DNA of 64,000 bases, taken from positions 1-64,000 of the forward strand of contig NIVC01003700.1 in NCBI GenBank assembly GCA_002269645.1, given 5' to 3'. Below the pieces are notes generated by a model. That model saw only the letters and a program-made list of their open reading frames with translations, did not search any database and was not told the origin of the DNA. Below, in pieces: positions 58,954 to 64,000 of this stretch. The stretch comes from Macrostomum lignano. Taxonomy: Eukaryota. The translations under genes and the position numbers were made by a program. How positions within the stretch are numbered: the first letter of the stretch is position 1; each line of letters opens with the position of its first letter.

Positions 58954-59947
58954 TCAAACAGAAGCAGCCACCATGCATTCAAAAGTCTTCATTGAGTAGT
59001 AGTGGTTCAGCGGATAGCCAATGCCTGGGGAAGTGAACGTAAGTCCGTCAGCCCACAACGGCTCAGACAAGTTAAGAGCTGTTGGAGGCGTGAAGTACCG
59101 ACCGTTCGGGTTGAAGCAGTGACAACTGCCGTACCACCAGGCTCCTTGGTAGGTGACTGCGCAGTTATGGGACCATCTGTCTTGATCCTTATCCGGTGTG
59201 CTGAACATTGCATTGTTCATGTAGGCACCAACAGTATGACTGCAAGTTGCAACATTCGACCGGCTGATGTCAGGCTCTCCGACGCTGACTCGGTATCCCT
59301 GACTGGCGTCCTGCACGGCGAAGTGGGCGTCCTCCCACCAGTAGCGAGTGCCGTTCCAGTCGCTCATCTCCCACCTCGCGCGCCTGTCTCCGGCTCGAGT
59401 GAGCTGATGGATCGCCTCCAGACCCATCCAGTAGTTTCTGTCCTGGCCCTGGCCGAACTCAGTCAAGTAGTCAGTCCAGTTCCGGTAGAAATCCACCGAG
59501 CCGTCCACTCGGTGCTGGAAGGTGCGCCAGCAGGTTCGTCCGAGCTCGTCCAGCTGTCTCACCTGTATTATCACGGTTAGCCAAATCGTAGGGTCAATAA
59601 TTATGCATCACGATAGCAACAGACATTTTGAAATAAAAATGAATCACACGGTGAGCACCTACCAGCAGCAGAGGCAGAGTCGAGTTTCTCGCATTGCGGC
59701 ACTTTCTGCATCCGCTCGTTCCAAGCTGGCAGCTGTACAATCGACAAGTGTCCCGCTCGCGATCGAACTCAACCGCTTGGTGCTGCGGTCCAGCGAGAGT
59801 CGCGCACTCCAAGTCGCTCCGCACACCAGCCACCGAGCTGTCAAGCTTGTACTCGCTCAGGTCGTCTCTCTGCTCAGCCAATCTGAGCTGCGACAAAGCA
59901 TCAGTTCTACAGAGCAGAGTGATTACTACAATAAGTTCAATAATCAT
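58954..59947 (-). CDS. secreted PAN/apple-like + fibrinogen-related domain (FReD) protein, copy 1
   Basis: Exon 1 59947-59663 (95 codons, signal-like start), 100-nt GT-AG intron, exon 2 59562-58954; [15 protein letters not shown]...YWMGLEAIHQLT...MFSTPDKDQD...NCA...GAWWYGSCHCFNPNG. Confidence 0.92.
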
Positions 59948-61189
59948 ATCCGTTTTGTAAAGCTTCTCAAGTAGTAGGGGCTGAATTTCTGCAGTTTTCT
60001 CGGCTTTGAAATTTACAATTAGTTGCAGTTGTTTGCTGGGATCAGAGTTGTTTGAGGTTTCTTTCTCAAATCGCTTTCAGACTGAGAAGCGAGAAAGAGT
60101 TTTTTATTGGCTATTCTATCTGACTTCGGCTAGAGTTTTCCTGTCTAGGGGTTGGAAGAAAATATTCCATTGTTCTTGTAAACTGCTGCCTCCCTGCCGG
60201 GGTAGAGAAGTTAGCGCTAGTCACACGATTCTCAAGTTTTGTTGTTAGCAACGCGACGAATTTTTTTCACAACTCCCAATTAATTTTTCCACAAAGACTC
60301 GCGTCCCTCAGTAACTGCGAAGAATTTTATGTATTGAGTTAACTGCCTGAGAATCCTTACAAGTGGAAACTGTCCGTATAAACTACCTGTTGCCAGGTGT
60401 GCCAGTGGCGTTTTTGAGGGCTGAGTCAGGCGATAGATACACTGCTAATACTGTGCAGGGGACGCAAATTTGAGTACTTCTAATGCTGCTAAGGACTGCT
60501 AGCCACGGGATTAGGATGCAGAGCGGCTCATGGTTAGTGCCTTAGAGACAGTGCAAGCATAAATGCTAGCCCATATTCAAACAATGCTGCATATGCTTAA
60601 AACTTTCTTCATAAATAATAAAATCGAAGCAGATTGAACTGTTAGAGCTTTGACTGTGAAAAATATTAGTTTGGTTTGCGTCTATTTTACCTGACAGCTA
60701 AATTGTAGATATAGTGGCTTTCCACGCATTATTTGCGTTCTCCAGGATGTTCTTTGGTAACATTTAATAATATCACGTAAAATCTTTATGTCTACGTTTT
60801 ATCTGAGATTTAGAATGCCTTTTCGGGAGCTATTTTCATAAATACCTCAAAAGGCATGTTTATTCATCTACATAACTCTCGCAAAAATATATATTTTAAA
60901 GGTGCGAAGCCGCAAATTTATAAAAAAGAAACACAGTGCATTGTCAAAAAGTAGAAAGTATTGAAGGAATAGTTGTTTTCGATCAGAATTCAGGATTTGA
61001 TACAAAAATTGATCTACGAACTGCATTGAATTGTTTAATCAGTTACCAGCATGCAAAAAGTTAAACAAATTATGTATCACTTAAGATTTTCATTATGTAT
61101 TCAGTCAAGAATGCAATTAATTTTGGATTAAGTAATTAATGAGTCTCGTCAGTGATGCGAAAAAGCCACTGACACTAAATTGGCATAAT

Positions 61190-62177
61190 TTAGAGTGATC
61201 CTGAAACCATGCACTCAAACGTATTCATTGAATAGGAGTGCACGAACGGGTAAACTGGATCTTGCGACATAAATGATATGCCGACGCCAGAATAAGGCTG
61301 CGTCTGATTGAAAGCAAACGGAGGTTCGAAGTACTTTCCGTTCGGATTGAAGCAGTGACAGTTAGCGTACCACCAGGCTCCGTGATAGCTGATAGCGCAG
61401 TTTTGAGTGCCCGCATCCTGGTCTCTGTCCATGGTGCTGAACATACTTCCATTTAAAAAGTATGGGCTGCTATGGCTACAGGCTACCACATTCGATTTGC
61501 TCAAATCCTGCTCTCCGACGCTGACTCGGTATCCCTGACTGGCGTCCTGCACAGTGAAGTGAGCGTCCTCCCACCAGTAGCGAGTGCCGTTCCAGTCGCT
61601 CATCTCCCACCTCGCGCGCCTGTCTCCGGCTCGAGTGAGCTGGTGGATCGCCTCCAGACCCATCCAGTAGTTTCTGTCCTCGCCCTGTCCGAACTCAGTC
61701 AAGTAGTCTGTCCAGTTCCGGTAGAAATCTACCGAGCCGTCCACTCGGTGCTGGAAGGTGCGCCAGCAGGTTCGTCCGAGCTCGTCCAGCTGTCTCACCT
61801 GTATTATCACGGTTAGCCAAATCGTAGGGTCAATAATTATGCATCACGATAGCAACAGACATTTTAAAATAAAAATGAATCACACGGTGAGCACCTACCA
61901 GCAGCAGAGGCAGCGTCGAGTTTCTCGCATTGCGGCACTTTCTGCATCCGCTCGTTCCAAGCTGGCAGCTGTACAATCGACAAGTGTCCCGCTCGCGATC
62001 GAACTCAACCGCTTGGTGCTGCGGTCCAGCGAGAGTCGCGCACTCCAAGTCGCTCCGCACGCCAGCCACCGAGCTGTCAAGCTTGTACTCGCTCAGGTCG
62101 TCCCTCTGCACGGCCCATCGGTCCTCGCAGAAACCGCCGCAGAAGAAAATGGCCACTACGAGCAGTGCGTAGATCAT
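61190..62177 (-). CDS. secreted PAN/apple-like + FReD protein, copy 2 (divergent C-terminal half)
   Basis: Exon 1 62177-61899 (93 codons), 100-nt intron, exon 2 61798-61190; same FReD motifs. Confidence 0.92.
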
Positions 62178-63287
62178 GGCGAGTTTTCGAAAGAAAAATT
62201 GAGTGCCTGCACAATTTAGACTTTTTACGAGCGTAGCTCAATAGACGCGGTCTGGTTAGCTGCTACCTGTGTTACAAGTGGGCTTAGTAAGAAGATTCTT
62301 TATGCGCATTCTTAATATGCACCTTCATCCACAGCCAGCTCTTGCGTTGCTAAAACAGTTTTTTGTTGTCACTGCGTAGATGCCTAACCCGTTAGAAAGA
62401 CTGCTGGCGGAGGGAAGACTTAACAGCCCCAGCTGCCAACTCACAACCAGTATTTGGGGAAGAAAGCTAATTAAAACGCTGCGTGGGCCACCGCGTCTTG
62501 CAGATCCCCTATAGCTAGCTAGATTTTGTTCCCAACTCACAAATTGCATTTTGGCCCGCAGTTTACACTTGCGACGAAGCTGCTAGGCTTTTGTTTGAGT
62601 GGAAACTTCCATTCCTACAGGCAACGGTAGTGCATGGTTTTGGCAGAATTATTACTTATTAATAAGCCGTAGCAGCTTCGTAGACAGAAGTATTGAAAAA
62701 GGCTTTTCTGAAGGCAATTTTCGGTAAAGCTTTGAACAGAAATACACTTTAGACAAGTCACTAGTGCATTTAGTTTCGAAGAAAATAAGCTAATTTACTC
62801 ACACTACTTGCTGAAGCATGTTACGCATGGTCCTACAAAATCGAGACGAAAAATGAAAAATAGCAAAGAAGCATATGCAATAGTATATAGCTGTTATTTT
62901 ATATATAGTTTCAATAATAAAGACTCGAATAAAAGCTTAGCAGTACACGCCTTAAAATGTGCCTGCGAATTTACAGATAAAAAAATAGTTTGCATTGTTT
63001 TCTCACAAATAAGCATTATGTTTAGAAGCATACAGCATGGATCCATCCCTCTCTAGCTAAAGACTGTAAGATTCTAAAAGGTTTTTAGTACACGGAATAG
63101 TCAAATAAACAAATAACTATAATGCCAAATAGAAAGGCAAAGTCTACCAACGTTAGGAGACGTAGACATACCGATCTTTTACGACACTGCAGATATCAGC
63201 TACGCGACTAAGTTTAAAAAAGGTTGTTGTGAAGCGCTCAAAACTTTTAAGGGGATAGATGACATATAGTAGGCACTAAAGTATAGT

Positions 63288-64000
63288 TCAAACAGAAGCA
63301 GCCACCATGCATTCAAAAGTCTTCATTGAGTAGTAGTGGTTCAGCGGATAGCCAATGCCTGGGGAAGTGAACGTAAGTCCGTCAGCCCACAACGGTGGAG
63401 ACAAGTTAAGAGCTGTTGGAGGCGTGAAGTACCGACCGTTCGGGTTGAAGCAGTGACAACTGCCGTACCACCAGGCTCCTTGGTAGGTGACTGCGCAGTT
63501 ATGGGACCATCTGTCTTGATCCTTATCCGGTGTGCTGAACATTGCATTGTTCATGTAGGCACCAACAGTATGACTGCAAGTTGCAACATTCGACCGGCTG
63601 ACGTCAGGCTCTCCGACGCTGACTCGGTATCCCTGACTGGCGTCCTGCACAGTGAAGTGAGCGTCCTCCCACCAGTAGCGAGTGCCGTTCCAGTCGCTCA
63701 TCTCCCACCTCGCGCGCCTGTCTCCGGCTCGAGTGAGCTGGTGGATCGCCTCCAGACCCATCCAGTAGTTTCTGTCCTCGCCCTGGCCGAACTCAGTCAA
63801 GTAGTCTGTCCAGTTCCGGTAGAAATCCACCGAGCCGTCCACTCGGTGCTGGAAGGTGCGCCAGCAGGTTCGTCCGAGCTCGTCCAGCTGTCTCACCTGT
63901 ATTATCACGGTTAGCCAAATGCATCACGGTTGCAAAAGACATTGGAAAAAATGGATCACACGGTGAGCACCTACCAGCAGCAGAGGCAGCGTCGAGTTTC
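63288..64000 (-). CDS. PAN/apple-like + FReD protein, copy 3 (5' end beyond the window)
   Basis: Exon 1 fragment >64000-63975, 78-nt intron, exon 2 63896-63288. Confidence 0.9.

Follow-up and report, generated by a model that had tools for sequence, protein, structure and literature searches.

Homogenised cores between divergent ends in tandem fibrinogen-related domain genes of Macrostomum lignano: a probable case of partial interlocus gene conversion

The last 5 kb of a 64,000-nucleotide stretch of DNA from the flatworm Macrostomum lignano (positions 1 to 64,000 of contig NIVC01003700.1, assembly GCA_002269645.1; hereafter the window) contain three minus-strand genes, c1, c2 and c3, for proteins with a fibrinogen-related domain (FReD). 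Each gene consists of two exons separated by a tiny phase-0 GT..AG intron, and the three form the end of a tandem FReD gene array, the products of which are predicted to be secreted and lectin-like. The genes are mosaics. Their middle part or core, which begins early in exon 1 and runs through the intron to about the middle of exon 2, is nearly uniform, silent sites included, whilst the back half, i.e., the 3′ half of exon 2 encoding the P-subdomain, occurs in two deeply divergent types, A (c1 and c3) and B (c2), and the signal-peptide segments of c1 and c2 differ strongly as well. The parts of the genes thus differ in age, and the trees of core and back half conflict. Very probably, interlocus gene conversion among neighbouring tandem paralogs homogenises the core, while two old types of P-subdomain persist. 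The genes and their parts, with the evidence for each gene, are:

58954-59947, minus strand: c1, a complete A-type FReD gene of 297 amino acids (aa) (open reading frames (ORFs), splice model and frame check, Pfam)
58954-59562, minus strand: c1 exon 2 (stop codon 58954-58956); 59563-59662: intron (100 nt, GT..AG); 59663-59947: exon 1
61190-62177, minus strand: c2, a complete B-type FReD gene of 295 aa (ORFs, Pfam, AlphaFold2, Foldseek)
61190-61798, minus strand: c2 exon 2; 61799-61898: intron (100 nt); 61899-62177: exon 1
63288->64000, minus strand: c3, an A-type FReD gene truncated by the window end in exon 1 (alignment, ORFs)
63288-63896, minus strand: c3 exon 2; 63897-63974: intron (78 nt); 63975-64000: last 26 nt of exon 1

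For the site counts, the three copies were reverse-complemented and aligned with MAFFT. In the signal-peptide part of exon 1, where c3 is not visible, c1 and c2 differ at 32 of 77 nt; over the rest of this exon they differ at 2 of 205, and the 27 nt visible in c3 show one difference from c1 and none from c2. The introns of c1 and c2 are identical except for 1 of 100 nt. That of c3 is separated from both by 7 substitutions and 22 deleted nt, the latter falling in two gaps (4 and 18 nt); three of the substitutions adjoin the 4-nt gap and may depend on the alignment. Differences in the 5′ half of exon 2 (289 nt) number 8 (c1-c2), 6 (c1-c3) and 2 (c2-c3), and those in the 3′ half (319 nt) 125, 4 and 126, respectively. 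An earlier reading of the same nucleotides, hereafter the original prediction, had described both the intron pattern and the change after the codons for VSVGE, from where c1 and c3 are nearly identical and c2 is divergent, and both descriptions hold.

The 3′ boundary lies right after these VSVGE codons (59274/59273 in c1, 61510/61509 in c2 and 63608/63607 in c3), where a maximum chi-square test also places the breakpoint for the pairs c1-c2 and c2-c3 (p<0.001). A second sharp boundary, absent from the original prediction, is found on the 5′ side at 59866 (c1) and 62102 (c2). In the tract, c1 and c2 differ at 11/593 nt, compared with 157/396 outside it (Fisher p 5e-58), and their longest identical run measures 146 nt, against a maximum of 74 in 10000 permutations (analytic p ~3e-10). 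The coarse mosaic is real and statistically overwhelming. Its segments are:

59274-59866, minus strand: homogenised tract of c1, with most of exon 1, the intron and the 5′ half of exon 2 (11/593 nt different from c2)
61510-62102, minus strand: homogenised tract of c2, with old divergent c2-specific sequence on both flanks
63608-64000, minus strand: homogenised tract of c3, visible part (exonic part 2/316 nt different from c2)
58954-59273, minus strand: A-type back half of c1, with P-subdomain, last B strand and stop codon (4/319 nt different from c3, 125/319 from c2)
61190-61509, minus strand: B-type back half of c2 (proportions of synonymous and non-synonymous differences, pS and pN, 0.88 and 0.27 against c1; groups with the M. 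lignano protein P0077, bootstrap 1.00)
63288-63607, minus strand: A-type back half of c3 (alignment and tree)
59867-59947, minus strand: divergent signal-peptide segment of c1, similar to that of the M. lignano protein P0061 (32/77 nt different from c2)
62103-62177, minus strand: divergent signal-peptide segment of c2 (alignment)

Silent sites follow the same division (Nei-Gojobori counts, c1 versus c2). The core shows a pS of 0/51 for exon 1 and of 0.03-0.10 for the 5′ half of exon 2; in the back half, pS is saturated at 0.88, with a pN of 0.27. These figures bear on a reading without recombination, in which the core is merely under stronger purifying selection. Cores are generally the more conserved part of FReDs, and relative to the outgroup protein P0001 the core differs by 34% and the back half by 53-61%. 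However, synonymous sites and the intron are near-identical in the core too, while the intron of c3 demonstrates freedom to change, which argues for recombination instead of constraint. Moreover, the topologies of the two parts conflict (see below), and not their branch lengths alone. Refuted by silent sites and incongruence, this reading deserves practically no credence. The original prediction had also pointed to dN/dS by subdomain: the contrast exists (pS 0-0.10 in the core versus 0.88 in the back half), but positive selection is not detectable in the back half, where dS is saturated.

Three sequences by themselves can show only which copy is the odd one out at a variable site, and outgroups were therefore sought; the closest relatives of c1-c3 were all M. 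lignano proteins. P0061 (A0A1I8IAS4) and P0069 (A0A1I8JKM2) have A-type back halves, 8-9/101 aa from those of c1 and c3, and the second unit of P0077 (A0A1I8H0B9) has a B-type back half, 8/101 aa from that of c2. Besides its back half, c1 resembles P0061 in the 5′ untranslated region (UTR) and the signal peptide, and c2 resembles P0077 also in the few residues visible before QRDDL (DRWA). In neighbour-joining trees at the protein level (1000 bootstraps), the core (150 aa) unites c1 and c2 with a bootstrap of 0.97, leaving 0.00 for (c2, P0077) and 0.03 for (c1, P0061, P0069), whereas the back half (101 aa) gives 1.00 to both (c2, P0077) and (c1, c3, P0061, P0069) and 0.00 to (c1, c2, c3). Incongruence of the 5′ and 3′ phylogenies had been named in the original prediction as a test of its proposal of patchwork recombination or gene conversion. 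The conflict is there, with high bootstraps, and together with the homogenised silent and intron sites it speaks for that proposal.

The contrast in age can also be read from amino acid counts. Were the core as old as the back half, ~40/150 aa differences would be expected, as estimated from the tree counts; 2/150 are observed in the window, and 15/150 between the cores of P0061 and P0077. A derived Ala (RRARW) is present in all three window copies, of both types, where P0061, P0069, P0077 and the outgroup P0001 have Val.

Outside the genes, the similarity is lost. The intergenic spacers (59948-61189 and 62178-63287) and the 3′ flanks, which did not figure in the original prediction, are mutually unalignable; the copies are thus not simple recent segmental duplicates. 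The c1-c3 identity of ~98-99% over exon 2 stops ~2 nt past the stop codon (58952-58956 / 63286-63290). No common flanking repeats or microsatellites able to mediate exchange were found around the copies, and the 64-kb window holds no other FReD copy or fragment. The possibility that c1 and c3 are homeologous copies falsely set in tandem was rejected, as their flanks are unrelated. Alternative exons or splicing were likewise rejected as the origin of the two back halves: in each gene, a single open exon runs from the core into the back half without interruption, and two paralogs at other loci (L001 and L002, see below) have no intron at that place.

Under interlocus conversion, two old gene types, A and B, would have become deeply different in the signal peptide and the P-subdomain half. 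Repeated and recent rounds of non-reciprocal homologous recombination would then have overwritten the middle of the genes, i.e., the N-terminal module (N-module), the intron and the B-subdomain, which would now be evolving in concert within the array. The tracts would end where homology gives out, at the signal peptide, where the P-subdomain starts, and at the stop codon. Once diverged, the signal peptide and the P-subdomain would have escaped conversion, and this barrier would be self-reinforcing; escape-from-conversion theory predicts such self-sharpening borders. The two P-subdomain types were plausibly kept through the binding of different ligands, and smaller, later tracts would account for the intron common to c1 and c2 and the patch common to c2 and c3 in exon 2. 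Non-crossover conversion as the exact mechanism, tract ends limited by homology, and a functional difference between A and B are what we infer from the pattern. The original prediction had the ligand-binding modules being swapped. This point finds no support: two types of back half are seen, each with its own gene lineage, and it is the middle, the scaffold, that has been exchanged.

Unequal crossing-over by non-allelic homologous recombination could perhaps have created c2, or c1 and c3, as single-crossover A/B chimeras. The genes are in tandem and in the same orientation, with a common core of ~600 nt able to mispair, and copy number seems different at the P0061 locus, where the model contains one FReD between two SLC5 genes. 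However, c2 is divergent on both sides of the tract (32/77 nt 5′ and 125/319 nt 3′), and its DRWA before QRDDL matches the B-type P0077. Because old type-specific sequence lies on both sides of the tract in c2, a non-crossover tract or a double exchange is indicated, not one unequal crossover. The two exchanges needed amount to conversion in effect, and the small internal patches (the intron; 59317-59326) also require short tracts. A single crossover is thus unlikely.

A similar architecture is seen in other M. lignano FReD genes. Those encoding P0004 and P0005, located on two different contigs of GCA_002269645.1 (loci L001 and L002), also have two exons; between them, pS amounts to 0-0.15 for codons 30-180 and 0.32 for the signal peptide, and reaches 0.5-1.0 in the last ~75 codons. 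Their breakpoint follows ...DSDNDDWSEGSC, 34 codons 3′ of the VSVGE equivalent and inside the P-subdomain (28/392 versus 75/172). For the two P0001 units, identity is 96% over the 5′ half of exon 2 but falls to 73% in the back half, and the units of P0062 look the same, with alike fronts and divergent backs. A homogenised core with a divergent P-subdomain is, from these comparisons, a family-wide pattern, but the junction is not a fixed module border, because that of L001/L002 lies so much further 3′. At the P0077/P0002 locus, the adjacent N-modules of the first and second units share FTELGGIC (not FDRERDTC) and VRSG (not VRSD), a distinctive patch which suggests local conversion between neighbours there too.

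This recurrence could also be expected of a selected or programmed combinatorial system, in which P-subdomain modules are shuffled on a homogenised scaffold, possibly somatically, as in snail fibrinogen-related proteins (FREPs). The divergent part is the region of the ligand and Ca2+ site, the combination of conserved core and divergent P-subdomain is present in at least three other paralog pairs, and gene conversion is an accepted diversifier of FREPs in Biomphalaria (PMC12074976, PMC7588048). Nevertheless, there are two module types only, each staying with its own 5′ end across loci, the breakpoints differ between pairs, and no positive selection is detectable with a saturated dS. Such a system is therefore quite unlikely. 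Similarly, a selected recognition repertoire, in which conversion hot spots, possibly somatic, join a common oligomerising scaffold with alternative ligand-binding heads, must be considered very unlikely; if true, this would parallel snail FREP diversification in a free-living flatworm, on a different architecture.

Within the core, the relationships of the three copies vary further. Over the end of exon 1 and the 5′ half of exon 2, c2 and c3 agree against c1 at 7 sites and c1 and c3 against c2 at 2, and no site is private to c3. The diagnostic differences listed in the original prediction, i.e., GCAGAGTCG versus GCAGCGTCG, GQGQDR versus GQGEDR, and HFAVQ versus HFTVQ, were all found. The last of these is the following patch:

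59317-59326 (c1), with equivalents 61553-61562 (c2) and 63651-63660 (c3), minus strand: HFAVQ (c1) / HFTVQ (c2, c3), 3 nt changes in 10 nt

Compared with P0061, P0069 and P0077, the HFTVQ of c2 and c3 is the derived state and looks like a small imported patch; GQGQ is private to c1. Private sites are distributed unevenly, with 7 in the intron and none in the exons for c3 and the reverse for c1 (Fisher p 0.0006), and the numbers of private sites in the exons of c1, c2 and c3 (7, 2 and 0) are unequal (p 0.013). Heterogeneity within the core is not significant for c1-c2 (p 0.45); for c2-c3 (p 0.005) and c1-c3 (p 0.0145) it is driven by the intron. Several short tracts within the core are likely, on the basis of ~16 sites. 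For the three-way mosaic originally proposed, this means that the coarse breakpoint stands firm, whereas the finer pattern has moderate support.

At this scale in particular, the quality of the assembly matters. M. lignano is a neopolyploid with three subgenomes that are 1.4-2.4% apart, and 36% of the length of the Mlig_3_7 assembly lies in scaffolds that are chimeric between subgenomes (PMC10733133). Collapsed or mis-polished paralogs or homeologous subgenome copies might give a false core or false tandem copies; the c1-c3 difference over exon 2 (10/608) falls within the subgenome range, and the fine-scale pattern hangs on few sites. However, the window runs through many minisatellites and an (AGAT)n array of 3.3 kb, and bridging such an array points to a long-read assembly, which would easily span a 600-nt repeat. 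Moreover, the flanks of c1 and c3 are unrelated, subgenome chimerism is unable to make a 39%-divergent half beside an identical half, and the same architecture is present in independent gene models, on other contigs and in another assembly. An artefact as the source of the mosaic is highly improbable. Short-read polishing may have touched single sites, which is relevant to the fine-scale pattern only.

Besides the chimerism of the assembly, some other points weigh against conversion as the explanation. The gene c3 is known without most of exon 1, and the array only up to position 64000. The incongruence test is at the protein level, with the core clade of c1 and c2 supported by ~7-13 informative residues. 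Finally, the signature of GC-biased conversion is equivocal: the GC content at third codon positions (GC3) is 0.71-0.81 in the core versus 0.57 in the back halves, but an AT-rich intron (GC 0.37-0.44) sits inside this GC3-high tract.

The proteins c1 and c2 have a hydrophobic N-terminal signal sequence, followed by the N-module of ~70 aa, which has five cysteines (distant paralogs have six), and the FReD. Their Pfam Fibrinogen_C (PF00147) matches score 132.9 and 139.1 bits, respectively (cut-off 22; E 2e-38 and 2.6e-40), but cover only profile positions 41-192 of 221; positions 1-40, corresponding to the canonical A-subdomain, are unmatched. An AlphaFold2 model of c2 has a predicted local distance difference test (pLDDT) score of ~80-90 over the FReD part (residues 100-295) and of <50 over the N-module. 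With this model, Foldseek retrieved the FReDs of L- and M-ficolin, ANGPTL2 and tenascin (E ~1e-18; target-normalised template modelling (TM) score 0.75-0.80), and the best sequence matches are ficolin-1/-2 (E ~1e-29). The original identification of the copies as FReD paralogs is therefore correct, and so is its statement that their architecture is unlike that of snail FREPs: there is no immunoglobulin superfamily (IgSF) domain in c1 and c2, where Pfam gives Fibrinogen_C alone and nothing in the N-module, there is no collagen-like region (PF01391 is not matched, and exon 1 lacks Gly-X-Y repeats), and a Cys-containing module is found in place of the A-subdomain. These are FReD-containing proteins with a non-canonical front end. 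A search with the N-module, for which no Pfam family was found, yielded 11 cluster representatives among 1.84 billion; all that were checked are from M. lignano, and among these at least the module seems lineage-restricted. A homology search with the A-type exon 2 gave distant paralogs only. The family is uncharacterised in the searched literature and appears to be a lineage-restricted FReD family with a previously undescribed N-terminal module. A function as secreted, lectin-like proteins is probable from the domain content.

The divergent half is indeed the P-subdomain, as had been proposed: alignment with ficolin-1 places there the Ca2+ motif (PDKDQD / MDRDQD), the NCA...CH pair and the following loops. 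More fully, FSTPDKDQD...NCA...SCH (c1/c3) and FSTMDRDQD...NCA...NCH (c2) align to FSTKDQDND...NCA...DCH of ficolin-1. By fibrinogen gamma numbering, the junction presumably lies ~6 residues before the B/P border. The ..WWY..CH..NxNG.Y pocket backbone is conserved in the FReDs of the window. The A and B heads are identical at 58/107 aligned positions (stop counted), and because they differ most in the loops flanking this retained backbone, different ligand specificities are plausible.

The public models P0001, P0002, P0061, P0062, P0065, P0069 and P0077 are read-through fusions of neighbouring genes, which hold two or three FReD units, or an FReD with an SLC5 protein, sometimes with frameshifts. 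The family is thus mis-annotated, and the protein collection lacks the window's own genes. A second M. lignano subfamily (P0062, P0063, P0066 and P0068) has the same N-module (...CRLGLSHCRKCRNANKGAQRVW...), and its tandem units are identical in front and differ C-terminally; one unit is broken by a DLDISNGESG repeat. Upstream of the P0004 gene, L001 contains an extra partial FReD fragment (8613-8820) that shares 78% identity with a portion of exon 2 of L002. A ~31-nt tandem repeat occurs in the introns of both genes at these loci, of 342 nt (P0004) and 1840 nt (P0005), at L001 10315-10607 and L002 11757-11943.

Directly downstream of c1 lies another gene:

47780-58300, minus strand: SLC5-like multi-exon gene, sodium-dependent multivitamin transporter-like (tblastn)

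Its exons are 81-100% identical to P0061/P0069 of M. lignano, and the source name of P0065 also underlies the SLC5 label. The fused models P0061 and P0069 contain a c1-like FReD gene, including the 5′ UTR, in the order SLC5 tail, FReD, SLC5 N-terminus, which implies that SLC5 and FReD genes alternate at that locus; it is syntenic with the window, as a homeologous, allelic or orthologous locus, and the SLC5-like gene serves as the anchor. The C-terminal tail of the SLC5-like gene contains a 57-nt coding repeat (47722-47962, DEPKPIDQSEDEVQPREAT). Tandem repeats make up ~36% of the window, spread over ~30 different mini- and microsatellite arrays whose periods range from 4 to 57 nt (1473-58010). 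They include the (AGAT)n array of 3.3 kb (e.g., 28377-31699) and many long arrays with a period of ~14-35 nt between 10 and 41 kb, and most long ORFs of the window are translated tandem repeats. An intact ORF of 407 aa with a multi-pass membrane look (43320-44543, plus strand) has a sub-threshold match to the Pfam Srx family of nematode chemoreceptors (E 0.0019); this seven-transmembrane-like ORF has no homolog at E<=1e-3 among 5.8 billion proteins and is possibly an orphan G-protein-coupled-receptor-like gene. Two other long ORFs, 7993-8913 and 3815-4852 (both minus strand), have neither Pfam nor homology support; a 24-nt repeat (SRQSPPQV...) underlies one of them, and the other, of 345 aa, has a Cys-rich N-terminus and low-complexity Q/S/T/P sequence. 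A search of the window found no Rfam families and no tRNAs.

The genes offer a clean example of partial concerted evolution, in which conversion would keep the scaffold uniform with two ancient ligand-binding heads side by side. It is an undescribed instance of a known process in a flatworm gene family, with no new mechanism, in a model for regeneration and reproduction. There is also a practical warning for work on M. lignano: such FReD genes are fused or missed in current gene models, and paralog-specific probes, RNA interference and quantitative PCR have to be designed against the signal-peptide or P-subdomain parts and avoid the core.

With ficolins and tachylectin 5A, the FReDs of the window share the fold (Foldseek TM ~0.76), the DxDxD Ca2+ motif, the Cys pair and the pocket backbone. 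However, ficolins have a collagen-like stalk, whereas the window proteins lack both this stalk and the canonical A-subdomain and have the N-module instead. In snail FREPs, the diversified part is mainly the IgSF region. The FREPs of Biomphalaria glabrata, which combine IgSF and FReD, are diversified by gene conversion and point mutation (PMC12074976, PMC7588048). They are, like the proteins discussed here, a secreted FReD multigene family with its diversity shaped by gene conversion, but IgSF domains are absent from the window genes, and there conversion would homogenise the scaffold while the P-subdomain stays divergent. The analogy with snail FREPs originally drawn is thus apt in that germline gene conversion probably acts on an FReD family, and fails for the IgSF domains. 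The tandem Sp185/333 immune genes of sea urchins (PMC3091723) are also small two-exon mosaics in tight same-strand clusters in repeat-rich DNA, with homology ending at the gene borders; they encode an unrelated protein family, and the FReD copies of the window are without flanking microsatellites. The closest likeness is to concerted evolution in tandem families, with a sharp tract that includes silent sites and intron, grouping by locus inside the tract and by type outside it, and tract ends at the loss of homology; nothing differs in principle. In the globin, opsin, MHC and KIR clusters, too, interlocus conversion is accompanied by the escape of functionally divergent segments.

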